From positions 1-34,255 of the forward strand of contig LPNZ01003081.1 of assembly GCA_001655205.1 (NCBI GenBank): a DNA stretch of 34,255 nt, written 5' to 3'. Both the position numbers and the translations under genes were made by a program. The DNA comes from Lenisia limosa. Taxonomy: Eukaryota; Protista; Breviatea. Under the pieces are notes generated by a model. The model worked only from the letters and a program-made list of their open reading frames with translations. It did no database searches and was not told where the DNA came from. Shown here in pieces: positions 111 to 25,800 of the stretch (the first letter of the stretch is position 1; each line of letters opens with the position of its first letter).

Positions 111-812
111 GAACACAACAACGCCATGCTACAGTGGAAGCCGAAGAAATGAAAAAGCGATCACAGACACGGGAGTTCGTTTCAGGTTTGCCTAATGTGG
201 AACAGTTTTGTTTTTTCTAACCGGTGTAGGCGGAACACAAAAACGTGATACAAGTTCAGGCCTTCAGCCCAAACGGGCAAAGTCAAAATGGGTGTGTTTT
301 CCTTGGATGGTTATTCTCAACAAACTGGACTAACGTTTCAGGATCAGCCAGATAGGGGGCGAAGAGAACGATCGCGGTCGCCTCGTAAATCACCACACCG
401 AGCTGCAAGGTTTGCAGAAAGGAGGGTGGATTCTTTTACAAGTTCGACGCTGGAGGGGTTTTTATTTGAAATAATGTTCTTATTTTCCCTATGTTCAAAC
501 TTCTATTCCTTTATTTTCCAGGAGGTCTCCTAGGAGGTCTTCACCAAGACGACAATCTCCAAATCGCCTATCTCCCCCGAGAAGGTTTGAGTATAAACAA
601 CTCTATTCCCTTAATGTTGTGAATCTTGTATTTCAGGACTGTGTGACTTGCTGTCCCTCTTTTGACGTGTTAGATCGCGTGATCACCGAGATGAGCGGCG
701 ACGTGACAGAGACCGTGATCGCGACCGTCGCGACCGGGACCGTCACCGTGAGCCCAGGGAACCTCGGGAGTCCAGAGATCGTGACAGAGATAGGCGAGAA
801 AGGCGGAGATAA
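111..812 (+). CDS. 3' part of a spliced gene for an Arg/Ser- and Arg/Asp-rich protein, probably splicing- or nuclear-speckle-associated; 5' end lies outside the window
   Basis: Exons joined at GT-AG introns give ...EEMKKRSQTREFVSGGTQKRDTSSGLQPKRAKSKWDQPDRGRRERSRSPRKSP...RSPRRSSPRR...RDHRDERRRDRDRDRDRRDRDRHREPRE...RERRR, stop TAA at 810-812. RS/RD dipeptide tails are typical of SR-related proteins. No specific family recognised. Confidence 0.7.
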
Positions 813-856
813 TAGCATGGTTTTCTTAATTTAGTTTTTCTTCCTTTTCATACAAA

Positions 857-3003
857 TTAGGTCCATGGTAAAAATGTAGGAAACAAGAAGAAACCAAGAA
901 CAAGGAATACAGAGTAATACCAGAACAGCGCAATTTTTTCCAATTTTTCTCTAGAAGGTAAGGGAAACTGCTCAGGAACGCACCCATAAATGGCGATATG
1001 CGCTGCAGCCCAGTGGAGCACTGGTGACGAAGAAAACAGAAACCGTGTTAATACCTGGATGTGGAGGAAACTAATGCGATTAAAGAACATCTTGAAAGGC
1101 AATTGAGCTCTTCACAAGCTTACGGGAGAAGAACTGCAGTTGCTCCGATAAGGTGAATTATAAATACTGTGCTCGCCTGATGCAAGAAAGACTACACACA
1201 TAAGAACTCCGAAATATATAATCCTCCCACCTGTGTGTTTTGAAGAATTTCATTCTTATCTACAAAATTACATGCAACAGCAAGAGACAACTCACCACGC
1301 GCAAGCCCAAGTAGGAAAAGAGACGACCTGCATAGTTTATTCCTACAAAAGAGAGCAACACTGTAGACAACCAAAAGAAGAACGGGGGCAGCCAGAACGA
1401 AGTTAGGGATTTGTGAGACTGTGTAGTATCTCATGAATCCCACATTCCTATATAGTTGAATAACACCCTATGATGTGCTGACAACAACAAAAAAAAACAA
1501 GCAGATAGCTTACCAGTATCTATCTTGTACATAGTTGTAAATGTTTGGGAACCTATCTGAACAAAACAGCGGTTGTGAATCGCCGAAACAGTATTGAGAA
1601 TAACTACAAATTTACACGACCTCTTCAACTCTTACCCATATGTGCAATATAATACAAATGGGGCAACGACAATAACACCTGCCATTACCATGTGCAATAA
1701 AGAGGCTACAACCTAATAGTGAAAACACAATTGAGATATACCAGGATAGGGTTGATAATGAAGTTGTAGTTTGACTTGGGTCTATTCTGAAGAGAATTGA
1801 AGAGTGTTTTGAGGCAATAGTGCCCAATGAACCCAAAAAGAACCATTCCATTCGACCTACATAATAAGGTGTTTCCAAGAACGTATATGAATAACACTGA
1901 GGAATACACAGCTCCCTACCGAACTAGAGACGCGCATGCGAACATGAGAGAAGCAAACAGGGGTCCACAATACTCTGAATATACATGATTAACAATTCAG
2001 TTTGAGAAGGCAGTCCCCGCAAACCTAATAAAAGCAGCCCCAAAAGTGTACATAAGAAGAAAGTCGACTCTGTATATCTGGAACGTTAACTGTTCTGTCC
2101 ATTCTCAACCTTACGCTGCAGTCATAAAGATACTGGCTGGGTTGACAGTGAACAGTAAACAAGTAGTAGCAGCAAAGGATTCGTTACCAAAAAGTTTCTT
2201 TGTCAAGCTACAGGGTGATGCTACATCTACTTACAAATAAAGAGCAAGAGCAGAAGAAACACAAGAAATGAAGGAAACAACTATCGAAGATATCAAGACA
2301 TGAGCGTGAAAAGAGATCTTAGGCTACACATTAAATAAAACCAGCATCTTACAATAAATTCCATTTGTTCAACAATAAAAACAAATGCTTTTGCCAATTG
2401 GTTTACAATCACTGGGTATCCTGGGAAGAAAGCATGCCACTGATCAATGGAATAGCCAGCAGTCGCGATGCTGGTGAAGTACACCCCGTCCCAATGACTT
2501 AGGGGGGCTGAGTAATGAAAACTGAAACAGGATATAAACTACGATTATCCAGCCTACAAAGCAACTTGTAAATGGACTGATCGAGAGGAGTGTAATCTAA
2601 TGTAAATATTAATGAACAGTTTTCTGGTTGTTGAGACAATTTGTTTGTTTATTGGGTAACAGTACTCATGAAAACATATTACACCAAAGTACCACTAACC
2701 ATAATGCCACACATTGGGAACACCATTAAAGTCAAATCTAATAAGAAAAATAGCTTTTGTCTTTTGGGAGGCATGCAGCAATACCCCCTGCCCCCCTCCA
2801 ACACACCTCTGCCATATCCTTCATTCAGCCTGGTAAATTCCGAAAATAATTTCCCTGATGCGTCGTAAGGCGGCAATACGTTCCCAATCAAGAGTGCAAT
2901 AGCTATAAACACAAAACGAATGCCAAGAACCCTGTTGTTTAGTTGGGGGGGGGGGGATAACTTACTTCACAAACAGACTTGAGGTTGTCATCTTTTTCAT
3001 CAT
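857..3003 (-). CDS. PIGV: GPI mannosyltransferase 2 (PIG-V/Gpi18), multi-exon
   Basis: Spliced exons carry PIG-V signatures: LPPYDAS, PLSHWDGVYFTSIATAGYSIDQWHAFFPGYP, GFMRYYTVSQIPNFVLAAP, LFSSSPVLHW, and many hydrophobic segments. Start ATG at 3003 or 3000; stop at 857-859. Confidence 0.92.
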
Positions 3004-3135
3004 GGAACTTCGCCCAACCAAAGCCCAATTGCTATTAAAATCACACAAACATCATAACAATTTCAATAATTGAAAAAAAACAGTGAAAGGGGTTGAAAAA
3101 AAGGGGGGGGGGTGATTGTCGCGGCCGCGGCGGGG

Positions 3136-3201
3136 NNNNNNNNNNNNNNNNNNNNNNNNNNNNNNNNNNNNNNNNNNNNNNNNNNNNNNNNNNNNNNNNN
3201 N
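3136..3201. other. Assembly gap (N run)
   Basis: Run of N after a G/GC-rich stretch. Confidence 1.
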
Positions 3202-3333: not shown

Positions 3334-4636
3334 TTATTGTGCAGTCTTCTTGCCCTTCTTCTTTTTGGCCTTAGGAGCTGAAGAAGATTCAGCTGGACGT
3401 TTTGAAATTTCTTCCTTCTTCTTCTCTCCCTTTACAATATTTCTCTCACCCTTCTTCTCTTCCTTGGCACTAATCTTCTCTTCCTTCTTCTCTGCTTTCT
3501 TCTCTTCCTTTTTCACATCTTTCTTCTCTTCTTGTTGTTTTTTCTGTTTATTTTCATTAGCAGACTTCTTACGTTCCTTTGCCTGAAGTGTAATCACATA
3601 ATAACGGTAGTTACAACTAAAAAGAGTCCATTGTAATTCTTGTCTTTAAAAACCCACAACCCGTTGCTCAACGAAATAATTGTCAATGGTATTCTCATTA
3701 GATAGTAAGCCCCGCAAACGGCAGCCTTTTTCCTCTCAAAACGACGCTTCGCCTTCTCTTCGTTCTTCTTCTTCTTCTCTAAAAAGTTAGGAATACATGT
3801 TCAAGTCCCCTTCCCGTGCTTACTCATAAATATATAAGGATCAGAGTTGAGATGTTTGATAGACTTCTTTTGGGCTTCAACTGCCTTTAAGTGTTTCTAA
3901 GTAGGTCAGCCAAGATTTGCTCCGATTAAACAAACTTTGGACTGAAGATGGGATTCCTCGTCCTTGAGAGACAAGAGCATTTTACCAGGGCAAGTACCGC
4001 ATTCATAAGCTGGAAAAGTAAGCTTACAACTACAGGACTTGAGCTTACGGGTAAACTTGTTTTCTTTCTCAGGCTCTTCGTCCAAAAGTGCTGCGAGGTC
4101 TTCTTCATCAAGTTCACTGCCACTACTCAACTCCTCCTCCTCATCTGCTTCATCCTCTTCTTCTTCATCTTCCTCTTCTTCATCAGCATCCCCATCCACT
4201 TCATCCTTGGGAAGTGCATAATCGGGAATTTCTCCCGCCTTATCCTCATCTCCTTCAGACGCATCAGAGTCTTGGTCAGACATACCAGAAAGGTCTGAGG
4301 CATACATGCCCTTAATCGTTAAGCCATGCACACTATTAAAAATATGTATAAAAATAAATATAATAGAGTGACCAGATAAGTCTTGACCGATTTGTTTTGT
4401 GATTTCCCAAAGACAATCGGTCAAGACTTATCCTGGTCACTGTATATGTATCTATCTTCATCAACAGCAGAGAAAACTCCCTCTTACATCAAACTCAGCA
4501 AGAGGATCTACCCCATCATATTCTTTTTCATTCTCAGAGTCAGAAGATTCCCAATCAATCTCCCTAAAGTATCAGCGAAGATCAATTAAACTGCACAGCA
4601 GCCAAATAACTCACAGTTCGCCAGATCTTTGGGCAT
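3334..4636 (-). CDS. Acidic N-terminal, Lys-rich C-terminal protein with one C2H2/U1-like zinc finger; possibly nucleolar, function unknown
   Basis: Hand-spliced product MPKDLANWEIDWESSDSENEKEYDGVDPLAEFD-GMYASD...(long D/E tract)...YECGTCPGKMLLSLKDEESHLQSKKHLKAVEAQKK (C-x2-C-x13-H-x5-H), then a KEEKK-rich tail ending KKKKGKKTAQ. The start codon is a best guess. Confidence 0.75.
4367..4441 (-). other. 75-nt near-perfect inverted repeat (about 32-bp stem, 8-nt loop) within inferred intron 4311-4487; pre-miRNA-like hairpin
   Basis: Arms on the transcribed strand are AGTGACCAGGATAAGTCTTGACCGATTGTCTTTG and CAAAACAAATCGGTCAAGACTTATCTGGTCACT. They pair as 9+17+2+4 bp with three single-nt bulges. 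The repeat is directly visible; a small-RNA function is inference. Confidence 0.85.
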
Positions 4637-4930: not shown

Positions 4931-7236
4931 ATGACAGTTTTTCTCTGCGCATTTGTACTTTTCTCTTTCTTCTGGCAGGCATTGTAATGAGATTATATTG
5001 AAATTGCTTATTTTGTAGTTCAATGGCGTTACCTGAAAGAAAGTTTGAAATTTTGCACATCACAGATGTTCATGGCTGGATTGATGGTTGGTTATGCGTT
5101 CATTCGACTCACAACCAGGTCATAGACATATCGAGGGCTTGGATGCCGATTTTGGAGACTTAGTTTCTTTGATTGAGTGGAAAAGAGTGAGTTAAGGTAT
5201 TGTACTTACCATTCAGCTTGAAGCTCAAGCGAGCAATGTCAATCTTCTTGTAATTGACACGGGGTAGGCTTTGGCTGACTTTGTTGACAGATATTTCAGT
5301 GATATGATGGAAGGTACCGGCATTAGTGATGCATCTGCTGTTCATGGTCAATTTGTTATTCCTTCTTTCCCATTGGATCTCGATGCATTGACAATTGGTT
5401 TGTTGGATTGTTGTTGAACATGTTTCAAAAGACGTTTTTTATTTCCAGGTAACCACGACCTTGCCACTAACGCGGGAGTTGATAACCTTCTTGAAAAGTC
5501 CAAAGCTCGTTGGGGTGACAGATATATCACAACTAACGTGTTCCACAAAGTGCATGGACGGATGGGTTCACCCTACCTTGTCACTACTGTTGGAGATACC
5601 AAGATCCTATACTTGGGAGTTATGTACAACTTTGACCACCAAGCCGACAGTGTTGAAGTACAGGTTTGTGGGAGTGTAATATTTGGACAGTAATGATATA
5701 CAATAGTTCTCTTTTGACTCGTGTTACAGTTTGTTGAGGACATGGTGGAGGATACAGCCTTTTTAGAAGCAATGGAGCAAGAAGTAGACATCGTCATTAG
5801 TCTGTGTCACATTTCACCCACGCTTCAACCCGAGCTGGATAACTTGCAAAAAGCTATTCGAAGCCACAAGCCTGACGTCCCACTTGTTCTTTTGACAGGC
5901 CACGAGTGAGTTGAGTCTCAAAACTAATTTGTAGTCATGTTTTGTACTCCTCTCTCCCCGATGCTCAGACTGTCAAGTTTGATTCGGCTTGCTACTTCCT
6001 CAATATTGGTGTCTTGCACTTCACCTTATCTCCTGTAAGCAAACTTCAGTGCACATTTTAAAAGGGGGAATTAATTACTGCTGTAGTCGAATGAAATGAA
6101 CATTGAATCGAGGATGTGGTATCCCACCACACGAGAGACGCTAGCAAAGATGGCAGGTCGTGACCTCAGCAACTTCCTTACTCCAAGTGGTTTGTGGATT
6201 TGGAATTGGGTAAACATTTGTTGGATTAAATTGCTTATTTGACAGGTGAGGAATTAAAGATTCAATTGGCAAAATGGAATACGGAGCTAGGCCTAGACAC
6301 TGTGGAAGGATGCAGTAACTACACTTATCAAAACGTTTGTTGGTTTACAGCAAAACGAGCGTGTCATTCTTTCGACTTACATTTCAGAACAAACCACCAT
6401 CTTCTGAATTTTCTCTTTATAACCTGCTCTACTATCATGTTGTTCCTGAAATTTTGTTCCCCAATATGATCCCTGGAGTAACAAAAAATGATCTTTGGTT
6501 CGTGTCAAACAACGCGTAAGCATGAAGATTATGTTGTATTTTTAAAACTCCTCTCAATTCTCTAGGTTTATGAGGACTTCTATATTCCAGGGCGAGATTG
6601 TATTTGATGATCTTCTCTCAATTGACCCGTTTAATGACACTTTTCATGTCGTCGACCCTATCCCTGGGTATGCTCTGATTCATTTTTCGAAGGGTTTACG
6701 TTTATAATGTTGTTTACCAAAGAATTGCTAACATTATGACAATTGTTTAGCACCATTATCCCCGAGCTAAAGAAAGCTCTTGTTGCTCTTGGCACCTTGG
6801 GGGAAAGAGGCACTATTCTTGGCGGAGGTTTGTCTTTTTCTTGAAAGCTTATCCAGCTCAGATGAGAGGGGTTCTATTGCATTTGAGGCAAGACCCCCTG
6901 TTGATTCCAGATTACCAAAGTACATGTGGCAAGACATAAAAATCAGCCCAAAGAAGGTAACTTATTTCTATATTCTTTTAACATGCTTTGTTAGTCTTAC
7001 GCCTTGGTTTGTGTCGAGTATGATGCTCAAGTGATCGTGAAAGTTCTCGCCAAGTTAGACCCTTCTATCCAAGTCACTTCTCAGGTTTGGTGCGGGCTTT
7101 AATACTCACCCTTTTAGAAATTCTCACATATTACAAGTGTCCCTTCACTGAAGGCTTACGTCAATGGCAGAATGTCACATTGCTGATTAAAAATGGTTCT
7201 TATGGTTATTATGAAGAGTATTTAATATTATATTAA
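4931..7236 (+). CDS. Secreted calcineurin-like metallophosphoesterase / 5'-nucleotidase of the yeast SMN1 (YHR202W) type, multi-exon
   Basis: Signal-peptide-like MTVFLCAFVLFSFFWQAFS; metallophosphoesterase motifs ILHITDVHGW, ADFGD, VIDTGDMMEGTGISDA, DALTIGNHDL, WGDRYITTNV and GHxH; stop TAA at 7234-7236. Confidence 0.85.
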
Positions 7237-10927: not shown

Positions 10928-13900
10928 CTACTTTCTGGAGCTTGTACTGTGCGAACGTCGACTCAGAGACTCAGCAAGCTGGTTTTCCACCCCGATCCTG
11001 GCAAATGAGAAAAGAAAAACCAGTCTTACAGTCTTCTGGAGTGCCTTTCTAACTGAGCTGGCTCCACAAGCTGGTCAACCTAAAATAGGTCATATTATAC
11101 TTTGGTGAGAGACCAATGATCATAAAGACACTGACCTTTAAGTTGGCCAGAGATGCATCAAGTAAGTTATGAAGTCTCGACAGCTCAGAGTTATTGGCCG
11201 AAGCACGCGCTGTGTTTTCTTTTCGACGGTTCTGAGAGCATGATCAACTATTTTCCGACAGTAAAAACAAAACAAAAATAATCAACGATGAATACCTCCT
11301 TTTCTTTTAGTCTGGCCTCAAAGCGAGCAAGTTTCGCCACTGAAAGGTTATAAACTGGAATTCAGAAAATTGATATTATTGACAATGATGATTTCTTGCT
11401 CACAATCGGCTTCAACTTGCTGTCGTTGTTCAGTCATTTGGCCTCTGATACGTGATGCCTCTTTCTGTGCATCATCAGCGCGAACACGGGCAGTTTTGAG
11501 GTCGGCTCGTGCCGACTCCGTATCACCATGAGCCTGGGGCCATTAACAACGCTGTGACAATGCTAGTAATCTTTTAACTCTGCTTACTTTTAGTAATTGG
11601 CTTCGAAGTTGTGTTTCAGCTCGCTAAAATAATGAGAAGACTTTCGCGTAGTTTACCTTCCATTCTTGCCGAAGAGCATTGACTTGACTTTTGTTCTTTG
11701 ACGATTCCGATCTATGCTTGTTAACAAGTGAAGAGAGCTCACTTTAACTTCTCAAGAGCCCGCTGGTGTTCCTCTTCCAGAGATTTGCGATCATTAGAGG
11801 CTTGAGAAAGTGTCTAAAGAGTCAATCGTTATGATTAACCCACCTCCTGAAGTTCTTGCCTGGCCTCCCTTCTGGCTGCCTCAACCGCTATCGTCCGTGC
11901 CGCCTCTTGGTCCTTCAAAGAAAGCGAACTGTCCCGACTTTGTCTCTCAAGCAGACCCGTCATCTCATGGATTCTCAGCCTCTCAGAATTCAGCAGCTGC
12001 TCCTGCGAAACAAGCTCATCATCAAGGGCCTTCATGATTGCTGTCACATCTGGTGTGATTAGCCGGAGAAACTCATTGAGGTCCAAGATCTTATCTCACC
12101 CAAAGTGGCCTGGAACGACGGGCTGTCACCAGGCATTGTTGACACGGTCTCTGCAAAGGCTTCGGGCTGTTTAGCCGGACCGGTGGACTTGGAAAGCCAT
12201 TGGTCGAGGTGCGTCACGTGCGGCCATTGGGCCTATTGTATCAGATCTCTTGACCAGAGTAAGTCAAGTCCTACCACTGGTACAGCCCGTCTGAAGGCGG
12301 CCGCAATATCGATGCCCTGCGTTGCGACCTGGCCGGCTGATACCGCACAAGCGCGCGCTGACACCAAGTCCGCGGTCAGTGAGGCGATCTGTTTCTGTGT
12401 GGAGCTTCTAAATAGATAAGTAAGCACAATGGTACCACTTGTGGAAGGGACCCTTACAAGTCATTTTTCAGAGTATCTTTGTCATACGTCGCAGATTCAT
12501 TGGACGATCGAAGGTCGTTTTCGTACTACGGGGTCAGACCTTTTCAATACCCACCTTGTGCTGAAGTTTGACAAGTTGTTGCGAAAGGTTCGATTTGTCC
12601 TCAGAAAGTTGCCTGTCAAAGTTAGAGCAAAAGCCCTAGTGCAACCTACTCGATTCTGGCCTGGGCGGTCTTGGCTTGCTGTTGAGCCGGCTGAGCCAGA
12701 GCGGCCGCGGCTGATCGGACTGCCTCCTCCACCGCCTGAAATATGAGAATGTCGCTGAAGCAAGAAAGTAATGCCCACATCAAGCTCTTGGCTAGGATGG
12801 ATAACGGAAGAGGAAACCGAAAGGCCACGCGCAACTCTGGAGCTGTATTGTGCCAGATGGTCACGTGAGTTCATTTCATCCATACGGTTCTACAAGGATC
12901 AGTGGGCGTTGTCACCAACCTTTCTTTCAGCATCTGCGAGTTTAGCCTCCAAGGCCCGGGTCTTGGCCAAAGCGTCCCTGTAAAGTGAGGGCAAAACAAA
13001 GAATGCTGTTTCATACTCAGTTTCCTTGGCAGCGGAATGAACCGACCGCAGTGATGAAGTTTGGGCGTCTCTTCGTTCACTGTCCAAAACAGAACACACT
13101 AACTGCGACAAAACACTGGGAAGTAGAGTCTAAAACATGACAAGCAGCACAGCACTCCGTACCAGGTCACATTGCTTGACTTCCTTATCCTGAACCGAAA
13201 GAGCAGAGGTGACACTCTCCGAAACAGTTCGCGTTAAAGTCGTTGCATTCTCGAGGTCTGTTGAGAGCTGCTGGATCTAAACGTGTCAGTGCAGGGTGCA
13301 TCAAAAAAGCACAGTCCAACCTTTGCCTCAAGAGTTTCACTGTCAAAGGATTTGCCACGAAGTGTGTCCTCCAACTCCCTGCGATGTTACAAACTCAATA
13401 CAAGCAGTAGATGGCATACTCGATCCTGGCCTGGGCGGTCTTGGCTTGCTGCTGAGCCGGCTGAGCCAGTGCGGCCGCGGCTGACCTGACGGCCTCCTCC
13501 ACCGCCTGCGGCACGGGTGTGGCAGACAGGGATGGCACAATATCGGTAATAGAGACCTGAAGAGCGGAAGCAGTTGCGGAAAGAACACAGCGGTACGCGG
13601 ACTGATTAGCATCAAGGGCCTTTTGAATGGTCTCGGCCTGGTGCTGTAAGGGCCGTTCAGCTGAAAAGAACAAACCTCAGCTTGAAGACGCGTGCGTTCA
13701 GCGCGCAGTAAAGCGGAAACTTGCTCTTGCTGAAAGAGTTAACCAAAAAAAAAACTCACATCAGTCTTTGCAGATGACACGTCACGCTCCATATTGGCAA
13801 CTGCCCGAGTGACAGCCTTGCTCATTTCAACATCGAAGTCCCTTTGGAGTGTTGTTGTTTTCGTTTCATGCTCCGAAATAGCCTTCTATAGCAGTTAGCA

Positions 13901-16900
13901 TCATTGACAGCTGACCCACTGCTAATGAACGTCGCGAAGACTCAAGTTCCAAGGTCAGCTCTCGAACTTCTGCAGTTTTTCGTGACACTTCGGACTCGAA
14001 TTCTTGGCGCATAAGTGTCATCTTGTCATTGTGCATCTGAGTAGTAGTCTTGTCTGGAGGGTGAACAGGATGACAGGACAAACGTTTATCTTCAGCCGCC
14101 TTCCGGGCCGCCTGAAGGTCATCAGCAGCCCGGGTTCTCAGGTCATTGAGATCTTGAGATGCTGATGCTGCTGACGATATGAAGCGAGACAGTCTGATTT
14201 TTGCGTCTTCCAATTGCATCTGGAATATTATTAAGGTATTTCTCTGTCGAATGCGTGTTCTCACACCAACCTCGCAGTCAGCAAGAGAGCTTGAAGTGGC
14301 TCTTATTTTGTCCTGTTTTTCCTCAACGATCCTCTCCAGTCGGTCCAACTCAGACTAGAAGGTCAAAAACACCAGTGGAGCCAACCTCTGCAACTTCGGC
14401 TCGAGCCTGCAAGCTCGTAATCCGAGCTGCCGTGGTGTCACTCCGGACAACAGCATCGCGAAGCTGCGACGACAGGCCACTTAAGACGGCAAATACCTCT
14501 TCTGCAGCCGTGGTTGCTGCTTCTGTGGTGTTACAGTCATGAGACACGGTAAAGCACCGTAGATGACAACCAACTATTTTGAGCGTTGTCATCGTCATGG
14601 AAGAGACTGAGAGGTAATCTTGCAACCGGAGCAGCGGATGACAACCATGAATCAAGAGTTGAAATGTCCGACCATTGGGCCTATTGTGTCAGAGGGGGTT
14701 AAGTCCTACCACTGGTACAGCCCGTCTGAAGGCGGCCGCAATATCGATGCCCTGCGTTGCGACCTGGCCAGCTGATACCGCACAAGCGCGCGCTGACGTC
14801 AAGTCCGCGCTCAAAGTCGTCAGTGCTGTCTCCTTTTCTGCAACTAAAGCCCGGGCTTCCGATCTAGAATTCCAATGAATACCGCCGAGCTCTTTTGCCT
14901 TTTGCCTATTGTGCCTACAGTCTTGCGTTGAGTTTGAGTTGAATTTCATGAGCAGCCATTGAAATGTCGGACATTTTCGATGAAGCCTGAAGCGTGAGAA
15001 GTGACGAGAGACCGACCTCAGTGACCTCAACGTCCTTCTCTGCTGAAACCTGGCGCAGCTGGCTCTCAAGAGATCTGCACTGTAAGAAAAATAAGGAAGA
15101 CGACATACTCGATCCTGGCCTGGGCGGTCTTGGCTTGCTGCTGAGCCGGCTGAGCCAGTGCGGCCGCGGCTGATCGGACTGCCTCCTCCACCGCCTGTGG
15201 CACGGGCGGCTGAAAATGAGAATCTCAGGAGATACAACATACCGCGTAAGAGGATGTTGGCGTCCAGGAGGAGTCTCCATCAACGCTTTCCAGAAGATCA
15301 CTATTGGCATGGATGGAAGATGTTTTGAGATCCAGGCTTCTGTCTGTCTTCGGGGCTCGGAGCTCAGGCAGGTTTGTGGTTTTCAAGAGGTCAGAGAACG
15401 GAATACCGAGTCCTGCTGCCACTGATGACGCGAGGGTCTTGAGGTTTTGGAGGTTTTGGTCAGATCGCCTCCGCATCTCAGCAGCCTTTCATGTCAAGGC
15501 AAAAAAGAAGATATCATATCAAAATAGCCATTCTTAATAAAACGTAAGATAAATCATCTACAACATGTTAGGCATGTCACAGTCATTATGGTTCAAAATG
15601 GAACAAACCTGCCATCCGAGACCTGTACGCTCGTCTTCATAAACAGATGCCATTTGGTCCCACTATAACTGTCACGACATTGTTGGGCTCACCTCCTTCA
15701 GTCCCTCATCAACTCGCTTTGTTAGAGCAGCAATATCAATATCGCGTGCAGTAACCTCTCGATTCTTATCAAGCAGCTCTTCTGCCATCTTCGTGAGCCT
15801 GGTGTGTACGTCAGCATGGGCTACCTGGAGTTCCTCAAACGAGGCCTTTTGCACACTGCCTGCTTGGAACTGTCTCTCTAAGTTCAACTACACGGTCAGG
15901 CAAGAAAGAGTAACCAAAAACATGCAGCGAAACTGACCTTAGCAGTTTGTAGTTCATCTTCAGCAGCAGATAGCTTCTTCTTGACAGTCCGTAGAGATTC
16001 CTCAAGGGACGTAGCGTGATTCTAAAAGGGTCAGTTATTAGAGAGTAACAACGTTAACCTACTTGAGATTCAGTAAGCTTTTTCTGTAGTCCTTCAGAGG
16101 ACTCCATAGCGTTCTTCAAAACAGCACTATTCAATGAGCACAGTGATCAAAAGGTAAGATCACGGAAAACACCCACCTTCTCTCATCAAGATTGGCCTGT
16201 AGAGTTTCAGCTCGGTCAGCATCCGCCTTGGCCGATTCAAACTGATGGGTTAGGACCGTCAGAGTCTCTCAACCCACTCTTTCACTCAGCATGGTAAGCC
16301 GCGCTGTTGTGTCACGTAGTTCGGTCTCCGCAGCTTCGGCCCTCTGCGCCACTGCCGACTGTTCGGAAGCTTGCGTTGAGATGCGTCTAGACGATAAGAT
16401 GCTAAATGATAGACACATTGATTTAGGCGATACATTGTTTGCCATTATTTATTGGCCTCCCCACCTTTGGGCTTGTGCTAGTTTAGCGTCAGTATCAGCA
16501 GCACTGATTTTAAATGCAGTGAATTGGTTGTTGAGATCTTGCCACTCATTTTGAAGGGTTTCAATTCGCTCTTGGTGCCTCAGACTAAAACAATAAGAAT
16601 TGCACTTCTTCATTAAACAAAAAATACTGAATATCCCGATCAAGGGGTTGGGCATTATGAACAAAATACCAACCTCTCGGCATTGTAAGCCTCGAACTGA
16701 ACTTGGCTGTCTATCGCGGCCCGGGCCTCTTGGCTCTCCTGTCGAGCGGAAAGATCGGATAAACTCCGAGCTACGGCGCTCGTCACTCTGTGCTCAGTTT
16801 GCTGAAAATAGTTACCTTGGTCAACTCCAAAACCGATCTTATCACGCTGGCCTACTCTGATAAGACCGTCAGCCGTATTGAGACACATGACAGTGTCAGC

Positions 16901-19900
16901 TCGGAGGGACTTCACTTCGAAGCGCATTTCACGCACAGCTCTACCAGCCCATCGAAGGAACTGAAACATTAGAAAAAGTACTCACTTCAATCTGGTCGAT
17001 TGCGGTACTCAAAATGGTTTAATTTGTTGAAATTCCTTTCACAATTAGACCTTTCCCCTCTATTTCATAATCAGACCGGTTTTAATATAAGCCCATACTT
17101 AATGGAATGAAGCACCCAATACAACACAGTGACAGCCTACAGTCTCTCTGTCCTCAGCCTGGCGTCTTTTGGTGCGATCAGCCAAGAGTATTGCGGACTC
17201 GGTTGCAGCTCGCTGCTTCGTTAACTCCGAATATGCCGTGTCAAGGTCACTCTAAACGGATCAGGCTTGTTGTATGGTTCACACTTTGGTGCTGTAAAGC
17301 AAGTAGGATTGCGTACCTCCATCTGCTGTTTAGTGAACTGAGAGGCCATTTCAGCTGAAGCTTGGTACGATTCGAAGAATGAATTCATTCTAAAACAGTC
17401 AAAAAAGGGAGTAGACAAAGTCAGCAAACTGAGCCATGTTGTCGTTTATGATGCCGCTGAGCCTGTTTTCAATACCCTGCGACTGGGCAGTCAGGTTCTG
17501 CGACTCGGCCTGTATGGACTGTGCCGCACGTTTGAGTGCGTCAGCCGCTTCGGCCTCCAGAATGTCATTTCGAGCTCTCAGGTGGTCAACTTCCTCCTCA
17601 AGCTGCGAGACATGCCGGCGGAGAACAGCCTGTTAATGTTGAATGATACGTAGGGGTTGGGGCTTACAGTTTGGTCAGACTCCGTCAGAGACTTCAAATC
17701 CTCCGTTAATCGCGTGACTCGAGTGGTCTTCGCGGGTAAGTAGCGGCGAAACATAGTGCATAGTTATAGTGAGATAACCCACCAGTGAGACGTTGGTCGC
17801 TTCTGCCTCTGATAAGCACTTGCCAGTTTCAGCAAGCTGGCTAGCAAGTTCAGCCTTGGTCTGTGGAGTGAGCAATAGTGCTGAACTAGGAGAGCCTACC
17901 GTAGTGATGTCATCAAGCTGGGCAAGAGCTTCCTCCAACCGGCGGTTCGCAGTTTCAAATTCGGACTCGAACCGGCCTGACTCTTGACGGAGTCGCAAGG
18001 ATTCCTCCCTCTTGACAGCATTAGATCTCTGATCCGTTTTGCTTTGCCCCTACCTCAGAAGAAAGAGCGGACTTGAGAGAAGCAGCCGCGCTAGCCTCGG
18101 GTTCCAGGAGAGACAGGCGATGGACTTCGCGCTCAAGGTCCCTGGGCTGATTAGAATTGCAAGTTACACCTGTTAGAAAATAAATCCCCCAACCTTGCAA
18201 TTTGACGTTGTTGTTCAAGTTCATTATGTAACTCTAAAACGAGTAAGAAGACCAACCAACACCCAGGACTTACCATTTCGGATTTTTTCAGAAGAGTTAA
18301 CCCGAGATTCAGCAGCAAACAGGTTCTGCTCCAGAGTCGTCACCTAAAAAAGTATTACATATTGCGACATGCAAATACATACTTACATACAACATATCGA
18401 TATGCAAATGTAATGTACTTACATATAATATGTATATCATATCATATTATATATGATATGATAATGTATAGATGTAGAATGAGACAGCCGAAAACATTGA
18501 TATTATTGCTCACCTTAGACACAAGGGAGACGGTCGCGTCGGCTTCATTTCGGATTTGGGCGCTCAGACCCGTCGCTTGTGATGTGGCTAAATTGGATGA
18601 CAATGAGGACAGGTGAGGTCAGCACACCTTGTGCGGCGGTTTCCTCAAGGGTGGCAACAAGGGCGCGAGCAGAAGTGAGTTCTCTCGTCAAAATGGCTAT
18701 GTCATCCTCCAGGGCTTCGCGGTTCTACAGCATGACAGTAGCGGGTGGAAAGCAATGAAATCTCTTTAATTGAGTACAAATAAATCAGAGGAATGCCCAC
18801 TGTTTTTTCCTCAGAGAAGCTAGATCGGAGAGTGGTTAGCTCGATTTGAGACATTCGGACATCATCTTCGGCAGCCGAGAGTTTGTGACTTAAAGTGTCG
18901 GCATTGACCTTGGCTTCCGACAACTTTGACCGCACGCTTCGCAACTCAGTTTCAGCCTGAATATCAGTTACCACCCACAAGGTACAAACCTTCTCTCTTG
19001 CGCTGGACTCCATTTCAACCTGACTCTTGGCCTCCTCAACACGCTTGGCGCATGCCCGTTGGCTTTCTGCAAGGGCTGAAATGTAAGGCTTTTATGAAAA
19101 GCCATACCCGAGTTATGCTGGTCAGAAATGGCTTGCACATGGGCTTTAATTCCTTCTTCATAGTCTGCAATCATAGCCTTGGCGTCCTTATATGACGAGT
19201 TTTCCACCTCCGCAATCTAAAAAGCGTTATTAAACCAGTTCAGATCGAGTAACCTTTTCAGCAACAATACGCTTGTGCTCCTCCTTCGGAATCATGGCGT
19301 CCGTTTTGAGAGCAGCGTCCTCCAAGTCGGTGGTCATTCGTTTGACCTCCCGTCGGAAGTCGTCCTCTGCACTGACCAGTTTGACGGCCGCCAACCGCGC
19401 AGCTTCTTCATGGTCATGTACATTTTGCACTGTGGTGTTAGTATCTTTCATGGCGACACAATTCACTGTATGCACCCACCAGCATCCTCGACCAGACTCT
19501 CAGCAAGCTCGGCCCGGGCCTTCAGACGGTCAATCTCAACCTGAGCCTGCTCCTCAGCCTTCCTCCGCGCCTCCTCAGCTGAGCTGTCTCCGGCGGCTAT
19601 GAGCGTTTCCTTCAGTGATCGATGTTGAGCTGAAAGATTGTCTAACGCCAGAGTGTGTGCCGTCTGATTGTCAGCTAGCTGCGCCGCTACCAAACCTTGA
19701 GGTTCGAAAGCTTGTCTTCGATGTCAATTTCCAGAGTACTGAGCTCGACCTTCAGCGCCGTGACTTCTCGCTCCCGTTCTATGAGCTCCTTCTCAAGCCG
19801 TTCTGCAAATATAAGAATCCGATTTTCGTCCCCCACGTTTTTCTTGACTGAGGTTGTTAGACCTCTCAGTTGCTGAGTCCAAGTCGGCTTGTCTTGCGGC

Positions 19901-22526
19901 AAGCCCGGCAGAGACCCTTGCTGAGACTTCAGACTCCAAGGTGGCCCTAAGAAGTCAATGGGACCTCATTGCGGACAACAAACTTGAGCATTTCATTAGA
20001 CCGTCTGATGTTTTCCAGCTCAGTCGTCATTTTAGATGCAGCGTCAGCACGAAGAGATATCTGTGTATTCTAAAGCATGACGGAACAAATACGCAACTCA
20101 CCTCGTCCCTTGCTGATTGCAGTCTCTCCCTCATTTTATCCAATTTGGAAGTGAGATTTGAAACCTCGATTTGTTGATCGCCTTGTACGTCAATCTCAAA
20201 CACTAAATCACTCACCCGCTATGCGACTAGTGCTTTGTTTGTCTAACTCAACCATTTTCTTAATAGTAGTGAGTTCCTCCTGGTGTCTGGTTTCCGCCTC
20301 AGTTCGTCGGTACACCTGGTTGTCAAGTTCGCGAGTTAGTGTCTGCAAGGTCAATTATACCCAAGAACAACGGGACTTATACCTCAACACTGTCATTCAG
20401 CGTTTTGATTTTAACTTCAGAGTTCAATGAAGCCTCCACAAGATCACCTAGAAGGTGAGAGCGAAATGACCATGACTAACAAACCGTAGTCTTCCCGGGT
20501 TTTTTCAAGAGATTCTTTTGTGCGTTCAAGGTCATGATAGCTGTCATCCAATTCTCTCTCTCTGAAACCGTTATTAGGTTATCTTATTCAATATAACTGC
20601 GATTACACTCACCGATGGGCAAGAGCGGTTTGAAGAATCTTATTCTGCTTATCAGTTTCGCTCACAGTTTCATTTAGCGACTGGAAAATTAAAGTCCTTG
20701 AAAGAGAAGTATAACTAATTCTGAAAACCTGAAGGACCATGCAGACCTTAATCTGGTTTTGCAGTTCGACCGTGGTGGCGGAGGCGTCGACAGTCTGCTG
20801 ACTGTAGGCCTGCTGGATAGCCTCAAAAGTCTTTCTCGCATCCAACTGTGCGGCTGATACATTTTGACGCGCAGAGGAAAGCTGAACAGTCACACCAAAA
20901 GTCACTTTCGTCAGAGAACTTTGTATTTTCATCCCACAAACCTCTTCGTTTTGGGACTTCAATTTCATCTCAAGAGCCTAAAGTATAAGCAAAATTTAAC
21001 CGGGTTCATGAAAACAGAATCCTACAGTGATAGCCTTTGAATACTCTTCTTCTCTACTCCGCATAATAGCCTAAATGATTATCCTTAAAAGAAAAACACA
21101 AGAGGGGGTTGCGGAGCGTTTCTTGACGTACCTTGGTGTCCTCTTGGGCTTGATGTAATCCAGACTTGAGACCCGAACATTGGGCAACCGCAGCGTTCAG
21201 CTCTGCCTGGAGAGTGTTGATTTCTGCCTCGTAGTCCCTGCGTCGCTTTTGATCCGTTTCATGCATTGATGACGCTGATGACTGCATTGTTATTTCATTA
21301 CATTCAACGGAATAAGACCATAGGATATTCAAAGTATCATTAGTATTGCGTGGAGTTTAAGAAACTCTCACCTGAGCTGTTTTCAGTTCTTCAGTGATTC
21401 TCTTATGATCGGTTTGGAGGGCCTCCATTGCAGACTGCGTTTGTCGAAGGGCGTCCGTGAGCGACTTAAATGTTAAATAGGGCAAGGAATGACTCACTTG
21501 GATTGTAATTCGCTGGCTCTCCGTTTCAGCATCATCCACCTGATGAAGGTCAGTACATCTCCAAACCTCTGTCCAACCTACCGTCCGAGCCTGTCCCCCA
21601 GTCATCATGTCTGTGATTTCCCTGGCTAAATTAAGAGGGTCAACACCGGTGGCGGTGATGCGGGCGGCAAGGTCAGCAAGACGACAGTCCGTATTCTGTG
21701 CGGCAGCTGAGGCTTCATCAAGCCGGCGGCGATACTAAACAATCAGACCGTTGACGCGCTTACATCAACAACAGCATCTTCCGCGACTTTCAGTCTTTCA
21801 AACGCTCCTGTAACGGCCGTCTCTGCGCGGACCTGCACCATTCCAGCCTATTCAATGACTTTTTCTCCCAAAATACATACAAATGAATATAATCTAAGAT
21901 TCTGTCCACCTATTTCTTTTCAATTTATACTATTAGTTGCAGCATGGAAGAAGAAAAACCGTGTTCCCACTTCCTTTTCCATTGCAGCTGCTCTCTCTGT
22001 AACCATCATCAATTGCTGCTGTAGCTAAATAGTGAGACAATCAAGTTCCTCATCAAGACCTACTTTCATAACCGACTCCTCTCGAGAAGAAGACATCATT
22101 TCCGTTACAATTTCGTAAATCTACAAAATTAATAAAAATATCTCTCTTGTTTAATACAACACTCAGGGTAACTGAAATTGATGATATAATATTTGTTTGC
22201 AGTGATAAAGATCATAATCAGATATAACGCACGCTGGAAGGAGCAGTTAATAAAAGACCCCACCCTTGTCTCGACATGAGCAGCAGAGGCTGGATCTCCC
22301 TTCAGTATCTGCACAACCTCATCCTCAACAAAGGCACGCCCTGCCTCAGCAACACGCTATGAAGGTCATTTGTGTATATTTAGCAATAATGAACAGTTAC
22401 ACCACTGCATACCTTGGCGAGGGAGTTAATCCTGTCATCAAAAGCGTCCTTTATTGTTTTATTTACTAATACTGAATCCCTTTGAACAGGGTCAGGAGTT
22501 GGGGGACGAGCCCCAGAAGCTTGCAT
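10928..22526 (-). CDS. Giant multi-exon coiled-coil protein (cytoskeletal or basal-body-like), no recognised family
   Basis: Dozens of minus-strand exons rich in A/E/L/K/Q/R/S with heptad character. Inferred start MQASGARPPTPDPVQRDS...EDEVVQILKGDPASAAHVETR-IYEIVTEMMSSSREESVMK at 22526; end ...ENQLAESLSRRSHSTSSRK with TAG at 10928-10930. It may be more than one gene, since I did not verify every junction. Confidence 0.7.
12224..14808 (-). repeat. Internal repeat B: two copies (14672-14808, 12224-12373) encoding ADL(T/V)SARACAVSAGQVATQGIDIAAAFRRAVPV|AQW
   Basis: About 3 differences in ~99 coding nt. The shared intron position also conserves its ends (gtaggactt...acaatag); the introns are 29 and 42 nt. 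Confidence 0.92.
12650..15209 (-). repeat. Internal repeat A: three copies (15109-15209, 13420-13517, 12650-12735) encoding AVEEAVRSAAAALAQPAQQQAKTAQARIE
   Basis: The peptide is identical in all three copies, with only a few synonymous nucleotide differences. Each copy ends at the same phase-2 donor (ATC GA|gta). Confidence 0.92.
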
Positions 22527-22810: not shown

Positions 22811-25800
22811 ATGGGTTTTGACCCTAATCTTGGCTTCCGCCTTATAAAGGATGTTGAAAGCGACGATATTTCAGTTGTTCACAATGCCTTGAAAGAACTA
22901 AATTCTCAAATCGACTTCTGCTGGGCGGAGGTGTCAGATGCCCTGTCATCACTGTAAGAGATGGATATTTAGGCAGCTTTCTGTGGTTTTCGACATCCCT
23001 CCCTTTCACCAAATTCTCCTGTTCACCTTTAAGTGAGGTGCTTCATGAAGATGAAGGTTTCGCTCATCGTCAACTTGTAGCGATTGTGATTTCTAAGGTA
23101 GGAAGAAGATAATCATGTGGTGGAGGACTGCTGAGTGAGATCTTGGGTAGTTTTGCGTTCAGCCTTGATGATTATATATTAGGTTTACTTTCACCTCGGC
23201 GAGTACAATGAAGCCCTTTCCTTTGCTCTTGAGGCAGGATCTTTCTTCGATACTTCTTCGCACTCAGAATTTATTGACACTATACTTGGTATGAGAGGGA
23301 ACAAGCTGAGGGAAAGGTTCTCTGGTTTGACTTTCTAGCCAAATGTGTGAGTGAATACATTGTTCTCAGACAGAAGGCCGCTGAAGAGGGAGTTGAAGGC
23401 AAAATCAAAGCAGAAATGACCAACATTATGACCCAAATGTTCAATCAGTGCATCAAAGACAAACAGTACACTCATGGTATGTGAAGGGATACCCCCCCCC
23501 CCTTTTCTTTTATTTCTTTAGGCATTGGTATTGCTCTTGAAACAAGGCGTATCGAGTGGTTGGAACAAATCATCACAGCAGCCAAGGACCAAGACTCCCT
23601 TCTCTCCTTCACCTTCCAAGCCGCCCGCGATGTGGTGAGGAGGGCATTCCTTTCTACATTTGGAAGAATGAATTTTCCTTTGGGGTAACAGCATTGCGGT
23701 TGTGCTACCGATCATTGTAACTGATTTAGCTCGACATCAAAGAGTTTCGTTTGGAGGTTTTCAGACTTCTTGTCAAAGTCCATCTTAACCAACCAATTGT
23801 AAAATATGTAGGGGGTGGGCGGATATTTCCACATTCAAGGAATTCTCCTTATTATTTCAGGACGCAGTCTGCGATCTTTTGATCGAATGCGACGACGGAG
23901 ACAAGCTTGTCGAAATCATCCTTCTTCTGATCAAAAAAGATCAGGTGCGTGGCCCAACCGCCCATTCCTTGAAATGCAATCCTCACCCCCCCCCCTCCAG
24001 GACGGCTACCGCATGGCTCTTCAGGCCTGTTTCGACTTGGAGGCTAATGCCCGCCAGGAGTTGGTGGCTCATGTGAGATTTGAGCTGTCTGAAAAAGGTT
24101 GGTTGAGATCCACATTACATAATGGTTCAGCTCTTGATGCATCGGAGTCTTTTGTCCCGCAGTTCTGTAGGCTGAACGAGGTAATGAGGCGCGGGTACTC
24201 TTTTTTGATCACTTGTGTGGCGGCCTCTTGTGTTCTCGTTGTGTTATGATAATCTGTTTGAGAGATCAATGAACCTCTTTTTAAGTTTGACCATTATTCA
24301 GTCGCCTCTTTTGACCCCCCTCCCCCCCTTGTAACCCACATAGGTTTTGACAGGGGAGTTGAGAAGTAAATTTGGTGTTGAGTACCTCTACAGCAACAAC
24401 AAATCCGACATCAAGATCATCAATGAGCTTAAGGTAAGTCTTGTCTTCCTTGAACACTCTTGACATTTCAGGCTCTCCCACGTGGAAACTCGCTCTGCCA
24501 TTGGGCTATTGTCTTTTCTCACAGTAGGCAGTGTTTTCTCCCTGATGGAGTTTGTAATCGTTTATTTGAAACATGTTCAAGGTGCCCGAGGTTTTTACGA
24601 CGTTTAGGTATGTTGCAGTCGGGTACTACCTGTGACGCCTTCCTCCGAATCAACATGAAGTGGCTTGGAAAGGCCACCGATTGGGCTCAGTACGCTGCCG
24701 TCGCGTCACTCTCGGTTATCCACAAGGTGAGCCACTTTTGAGGCGTGGTAACACTTTAAGGGACACACCTCTGAGGCTTTCAAAATTCTCAAGCCCTACC
24801 TCCCGTCGCTCTCCAGCACTAACAGAGAAAGCTTTGCCGAGGCCGGAGCCCTTTGTGGATTAGGTTTGTTGGCACTTGCTACCAAAGCAGAAGAGCTGAT
24901 TGCTTAGGACTGATCCATGCCGGGCAGTCTGAGAACGTGCATGATTTCCTCTTGGAGGCTCTTCGTAACGCTGGAACCGGTATGTACTCCGTGTATTTTC
25001 TCACAGTATCTTCGCGGTGTAGTTTTTTTTGCTTTTTATCTGTTTTCATAAACGTTAAAGTAATTGTTAAACAGACCCGCCCCCACTTTAAGACGTTCTT
25101 TACCTTGCCCCCAGACGAGACGATCCAGCATGGCGCCTGCATGGGTATCGGAATAGCCGGCATGGGCTCGGCGTCACCCGAGTCTTACGAGGCGGTCCGC
25201 ACCATTCTCCACTCCGACTCGGCTAACGGTGGCGAAGCTGCCGGTCTGGCTATCGGCCTCATCCACCTGGGCAAGGCCCCTGCCGAGGTTGTGTCTGAAA
25301 CCCTGGCTTATGCACGTGACACTCTCCACGAGAAGATTGTTAGATCATCAGCTCTTGGTGGGCGGCTGCTGACTATCTTTTGCGCATTTGAGACTCTTCT
25401 AACTTCCAAGGATTGAGCTTCACCGTTATGGGTTGTGAGGAAGGTGGAGACTCTTTGATCGAAACACTGACATCCGAAAAGGTACCGTTTGAAATCCTTC
25501 TTGTTCCTCATTTCTTCTTCACCTTTCAGGACCCCATTCTTCGTTATGGTGGCGCATACAGTATTGGTCTGTCCTACGTTGGTACCTCAAGCTCTAGTGC
25601 CGTGAGAAGGCTTCTCCATCTTGCCGTTTCTGATGCTTCCGATGACGTGAGAAGAGCCGCAGTGACAAGTGGGTACTCTCGACGTTGTTTTAGGTCTAAC
25701 TCCCAAGGTCTTTCGTTTGTTCTGTTCCGTAACCCGGGCCGACTTTGTGATGTTGTTCGTCTGTTATCAGAGTCATTCAACCCCAACGTCAGGTATGTCG

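Follow-up and report, generated by a model that had tools for sequence, protein, structure and literature searches.

The window analyzed here is a stretch of 34,255 nucleotides from Lenisia limosa, and the feature of interest lies in a small putative gene on its minus strand. In the gene model, which was predicted from the sequence, exon 2 (4488-4563, minus strand) reads ...EIDWESSDSENEKEYDGVDPLAEFD and ends at 4488 with ...GAG TTT GAT, immediately followed by a GT donor at 4487-4486. The corresponding AG acceptor is found at 4312-4311, after which the minus strand continues with GGC ATG TAT, and the frame is kept across the 177 nt between the two exons. Since a TGA stands in the exon-2 frame at 4463-4461, read-through of this interval is impossible. 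Based on the sequence, the frame, and the in-frame stop, we interpret the interval at 4311-4487 (minus strand) as a putative GT-AG intron that is probably removed by splicing. Putative exon 3 (3936-4310, minus strand) encodes an acidic region followed by a CxxC motif. No Pfam match was found for this exon, and a word search with the stop-free open reading frame at 3909-4424 returned the window's own ORF as the sole match. By eye, a putative C2H2-like CxxC...HxxxxxH arrangement can be traced in the gene, with the CxxC in exon 3 and the HxxxxxH in exon 4.

The other introns of the gene are short. The upstream intron has 51 nt (4564-4614), and the downstream introns, also of the GT-AG type, have 39 and 45 nt. 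A further possible intron of about 134 nt was noted at 3584-3717 (minus strand), between exons rich in K and E, and long introns in this gene may not be limited to the one that bears the repeat described below. The original prediction had called the 177-nt intron oversized, which is a fair description when it is set against 51, 39, and 45 nt plus one possible intron of about 134 nt.

A run of N that marks an assembly gap is located at 3136-3201 of the window, just downstream of the 3' end of the gene, and is bordered by poly-C/poly-G and GC-rich junk (flanks 3100-3135). The G+C content is about 0.50 at 12001-20000, versus 0.37 to 0.44 in most of the window. An ORF fragment at 24853-25416 (plus strand) contains a proteasome/cyclosome PC repeat (PC_rep; Rpn1/Rpn2-like), which is the only clearly conserved domain among the 17 ORFs of the window; a match to DUF4200 was weak.

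The middle of the putative intron is occupied by an inverted repeat, with arms at 4375-4402/4405-4432 and 4363-4375/4433-4445. RNA folding gave a hairpin composed, in order, of 9 bp, a 1-nt bulge, 17 bp, 2 bp, a 1x1 internal loop, 4 bp, and an 8-nt loop. The 101 nt at 4355-4455 fold at −47.6 kcal/mol (z = −11.1), a value reached by none of 200 shuffled sequences, and the full 177-nt interval folds at −64.2 kcal/mol (z = −8.7). The geometry claimed for this hairpin, a 26-bp core with one bulge, about 32 bp in total, and an 8-nt loop, was accurate, and it is a geometry that suits a pre-miRNA.

We searched the window's own 49-Mb assembly, which consists of 11,727 contigs, for further copies of the hairpin. 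A 101-nt query covering it returned 1,279 first-look candidates, and all 40 places that were scored, on different contigs, matched at 86 to 92% identity. When a 701-nt query spanning exons 1 to 3 was used, repeats elsewhere were found only at query positions 287-413, which correspond to the hairpin; the rest of the intron (4445-4487 and 4311-4363) and the exons are unique in the assembly. The 18-nt arm core GATAAGTCTTGACCGATT, allowing up to two mismatches, was matched 1,689 times in the forward and 1,771 times in the reverse orientation, and the reversed pattern, used as a control, gave 0 and 3 matches. Because the core occurs once per strand in each element, these counts correspond to about 1,700 elements, or one every 29 kb or so. 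Only one of them lies in the window. An exact-pattern scan of metagenome contigs, made to look for the element outside the assembly, found none.

To define the family, we aligned the 20 best-matching copies together with 50 nt of flank and added a second sample of 40 other places, drawn from the pattern matches in the order of their contigs and so independent of similarity to the copy in the window. The homology stops abruptly at TA|CAGTGACC...GGTCACTG|TA (TA|CAGTG...CACTG|TA), and the flanks beyond these edges are unrelated. The family thus consists of dispersed copies, about 1,700 in number, with sharp boundaries and unrelated surroundings. Among the 45 full-length copies, 28 are flanked by TA at each end, and nearly all of the others have one TA and a one-base variant opposite. 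Identical flanking k-mers were found only at k = 2 (26 of 41 copies), with a minor signal at k = 4 (7 of 41) that represents TATA. Longer target-site duplications, such as the 8 bp of hAT or the 3 bp of PIF elements, were ruled out, as the flanks show no duplication of 3 to 9 bp. In the flank profile, T at −2 and A at −1 each reach 85 to 87%, positions −5 to −3 show a weaker preference for A-T-A, and the information falls to zero beyond −5, which indicates ATA-TA-TAT as the favored insertion context.

In an alignment of 42 copies (A1), the consensus is 78 bp long, plus TA on each side. It folds as a perfect stem of 31 bp, TA included, at −58.6 kcal/mol. With 78 bp in the consensus and 77 bp in the copy of the window, there is no room for an ORF, and the element is non-coding. 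The 22 full-length copies aligned from the contig-order sample average 87% identity to the consensus, and one-armed truncations account for 6 of 43 intervals in that sample. The family is moderately old.

We also looked for sites that lack the insertion. The 701-nt query gave no second copy of the flanks in the assembly, and no two-sided empty site was found when the flanks of 73 copies were compared with all fetched loci; one comparison was obtained on one side only, at the end of another repeat. The TA duplication is thus a statistical result drawn from many copies, and formally the TA may instead belong to the element as its terminal base pair.

Within the assembly, the contig G000:C9521 (locus L052) carries a complete MITE followed by two extra tandem copies of the 3' arm (3374-3535) and a shortened variant of about 70 bp in which the arms almost abut (6886-6956). 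Both are structural variants of the MITE family. The sampled contigs are dense in short repeat families. A second abundant family, with a small GGC-TTCG-GCC hairpin and an end that reads ...GGACGGCTTCGGCCAGATACAACC...TTTCTCATTGCTATA, was seen at L059:215-288, L056:372-444, L017:390-458, L007:570-638, L006:596-664, and many more places, and in two of these loci (L059 and L056) the MITE lies directly at the TATA end of this second family. Another dispersed repeat of about 80 to 90 bp adjoins several MITE copies (L019:206-306 and L010:1593-1693) and also has matches in L013, L100, L095, L086, L069, L002, L012, L018, and L006.

From the repeat search and the alignments, the copy in the window extends over 77 bp at 4366-4442 and has 90% identity to the consensus, with the termini CAGTG...CACTC in place of the consensus CACTG at the second end. 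Its 5' terminal inverted repeat, recognized from the inverted repeat and the fold, occupies 4415-4442 (minus strand) and reads CAGTGACCAGGATAAGTCTTGACCGATT on the gene strand, with the 18-mer core at 4415-4432 (minus strand). The 3' terminal inverted repeat, delimited by alignment, lies at 4366-4392 (minus strand), with its 18-mer core on the plus strand at 4375-4392. Between the two arms, a less conserved central segment (4393-4414, minus strand) provides the loop together with a weak distal stem, and it is here that the alignment is most variable. The two halves of the presumed TA target-site duplication, assigned from the alignments and the flank statistics, are at 4443-4444 and 4364-4365. 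The 3' arm lacks one C of the consensus (alignment column 79), a gap shared only with the copies L015 and L061, and this 1-nt deletion relative to the consensus is the single bulge of the hairpin; the last pentamer of the same arm carries a G-to-C change. The copy is average for the family both in how closely it matches the consensus and in its hairpin energy, for which it takes rank 14 among 42.

The alignment A1 also allowed us to ask whether the stem is maintained by selection. For the 31-pair helix, 90.0% of the cells are paired, compared with 90.1% after the 3' letters were shuffled among the copies, and the covariation score is 0.078, compared with 0.079 after shuffling. This absence of covariation indicates that changes in the two arms occur independently. 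Each copy received its hairpin from a palindromic master element, and after insertion the pairing decays neutrally. Such decay agrees with terminal repeats that serve as transposase-binding sites, and it is at odds with an RNA structure under selection.

Taken together, we consider it very probable that the hairpin is a copy of a non-autonomous MITE of about 78 bp, of the Tc1/mariner type, present as an ordinary insertion in a pre-existing intron. The original prediction had offered a tiny non-autonomous element as the third of its alternatives, and this is borne out by the roughly 1,700 TA-flanked copies and their sharp boundaries. It had also stated that a MITE would be indicated by many dispersed copies that carry target-site duplications, and the check for genome copies of the arms gave this outcome, with about 1,700 TA-flanked copies across the assembly. 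A TA duplication of 2 bp is the mark of the Tc1/mariner/IS630 group, CAGTG termini recall those of Tc1 and Tc3, and the central TA with AT repeats around it is reminiscent of the target preference that has been reported for Tc1-like elements. We infer the superfamily and the mechanism of transposition from the TA flanks and the CAGTG termini alone, with the criteria for MITEs and the meaning of TA duplications taken from the literature (PMC4495683).

The element is built as a near-palindrome of two terminal inverted repeats of about 30 bp, which start with CAGTG and stand about 16 to 20 nt apart. According to the mechanism that we propose, a transposase encoded elsewhere would bind both repeats and excise the element, which would then be reinserted at a TA dinucleotide, preferably in the context ATA-TA-TAT, with duplication of the TA on insertion. 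The interval minus the element and one TA amounts to 98 nt, and the copy in the window would have entered an existing intron of about this length in the small acidic CxxC gene and enlarged it to 177 nt. The shape that resembles a pre-miRNA would then be explained by the fact that both ends of the element are inverted copies of one transposase-binding site.

The assembly was also searched for a possible source of the transposase. In a Pfam search, DDE_3 (weak fragments of the Tc1/mariner type) and pogo-like DDE_1 transposase genes were found to exist in the assembly, and the mariner family Transposase_1 was not detected in it. The contig G000:C9521 (locus L052), already mentioned for its variant copies, has an intact ORF of 472 aa with a pogo-type DDE_1 domain (62 bits) at 671-2086 (plus strand), preceded by an ORF of 167 aa; the terminal repeats of the MITE do not flank the 472-aa ORF within the contig. 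None of 30 transposase loci, nor C9521, carries the repeat of the MITE at its ends, and no partner arm was found within 2 to 8 kb outward of six one-armed copies, in a search for an autonomous partner that covered part of the approximately 3,460 arm matches.

Several other explanations have to be weighed against an ordinary MITE insertion. As the element sits within an intron, it might be an introner, that is, an insertion that created the intron and supplies its splice sites. However, both splice sites belong to unique sequence outside the repeat, the GT donor at a distance of 45 nt upstream and the AG acceptor at 53 nt downstream, and the termini of the family carry no splice signals placed for use. 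Since the splice sites are outside the element, it entered an existing non-coding interval; the frame of exon 2 already stops (the TGA at 4463-4461) before the element is reached, and the flanks would have been non-coding before the insertion. We therefore regard an introner origin as highly improbable. A mirtron was ruled out as well, because the hairpin is internal to the intron and its ends are not set by splicing. An artefact of assembly or sequencing, such as a fold-back chimera, might be suspected in an assembly that is this fragmented, with an N-gap about 1.2 kb away from the hairpin. This suspicion is opposed by the shared structure, boundaries, and TA flanks of dozens of copies that have diverged independently and lie on different contigs, and its probability is practically negligible.

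It has also been proposed that the stem is kept as an aid to splicing, either by bringing the two splice sites of a long intron closer to each other or by masking decoy sites. With a stable stem, the effective length of the intron would indeed fall from 177 to about 95 nt, and most introns read in the gene have 39 to 51 nt. However, the stem is inherited from the transposon, and the same hairpin is found in about 1,700 unrelated contexts; its arms do not covary, and the copy in question already has a bulge and mismatches compared with the consensus. Any approach of the splice sites brought about by the stem would be incidental at most, and we consider selection for it very unlikely.

The hairpin had been put forward above all as a dedicated intron-hosted precursor of a miRNA or siRNA, a proposal that finds no support now that it turns out to be one of about 1,700 dispersed, TA-flanked copies. 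A weaker form of the proposal is that the MITE hairpin is in addition processed from the spliced intron by a Dicer-like enzyme and loaded into Argonaute, giving a functional miRNA or siRNAs. The stem of 26 to 32 bp with its 8-nt loop fits this reading, the intron is probably transcribed, and there are precedents in the derivation of hsa-mir-548 from Made1 (PMC1784062) and in the "transposition-transcription" route of plants (PMC9641971). However, with so many near-identical hairpins in the genome, nothing singles out this copy, whose folding energy is average for the family. A miRNA is expected to be a specific locus under selection; the hairpin has about 1,700 paralogs, and the covariation between its arms is no greater than in shuffled alignments.

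The search for the processing enzymes, which had been suggested together with the proposal, gave a divided result. One Piwi-domain match was obtained in the assembly, in an open frame of 361 aa at 1492-2574 (minus strand) of contig G000:C7125 (locus L053; 141 bits), which speaks for the processing reading, although this contig may not come from the same organism as the window. RNase III (PF00636 and PF14622) and PAZ were undetected in an exon-by-exon search of a fragmented, mixed assembly, a search that is weak for genes split by introns and by which absence is not implied. The missing RNase III and PAZ matches probably reflect limited search sensitivity and not a true absence. Against Rfam, only assorted miRNA-hairpin families were matched, on both strands and far below threshold (best score 32.8 bits versus a gathering score of 211), as is expected of any long hairpin. 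Small RNAs may possibly arise from a transcribed MITE hairpin, by analogy with the precedents cited, but on the above evidence a functional product of the copy in the window is quite unlikely. By the same analogy, it is conceivable that intronic MITE copies in general are diced and loaded into the single Argonaute/Piwi protein, which would represent an early MITE-to-miRNA/siRNA pathway outside plants and animals; we consider this unlikely too. If true, such a pathway could connect about 1,700 loci in trans.

The main value of the analysis is as a correction, in that long, complex, near-perfect intronic hairpins in this genome need a repeat test first. Such hairpins are spread throughout the genome by at least one MITE family with about 1,700 copies, and any scan for miRNAs or structured RNAs will therefore pick them up. 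The consensus, the TA flanks, and the ATA-TA-TAT context provide a useful repeat-library entry for a poorly annotated assembly, and masking the family will improve gene and intron models. The family is also a defined set of loci for checking against small-RNA data.

We compared the element with systems that have been described elsewhere. As with introners and mirtrons, a short spliceosomal intron harbors a structured sequence of repeat origin, but the ends of the element are 45 and 53 nt away from the splice sites. Both miRNAs and siRNAs are known to originate from transcribed MITE hairpins (PMC1784062), and in plants, MITEs inserted into introns of active genes can become miRNAs by the "transposition-transcription" route (PMC9641971). 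The copy in the window resembles the MITEs behind these plant miRNAs in that it is of suitable size, sits in an intron, and would be transcribed as a hairpin. It differs from them in that processing, a conserved mature sequence, and targets would all be hypothetical here.

The element is a Stowaway/Made1-like MITE; the family is new, but the kind of element is well known. Like the plant Stowaway and other TA-flanked MITEs (PMC4495683), it is small and non-coding, has terminal inverted repeats and TA flanks, reaches a high copy number, and is often found in or near genes. Unlike Stowaway elements, which have the terminal motif CTCCCTCC, it has CAGTG termini, and it is shorter than most Stowaways. 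The closest described element in build is Made1, an 80-bp palindromic, mariner-derived human MITE composed of 37 bp + 6 bp + 37 bp, which is the source of hsa-mir-548 (PMC1784062). There is no sequence relationship between the two, and the arms of the present element, about 30 bp, surround a center of about 16 to 20 nt; a small RNA and a mariner origin are known for Made1, whereas the element described here is known only at the level of sequence. As in Made1, a length of about 80 bp is made up almost entirely of terminal inverted repeats, the element is a near-perfect palindrome that would form a very stable hairpin when transcribed, and many dispersed paralogs are present in the genome.
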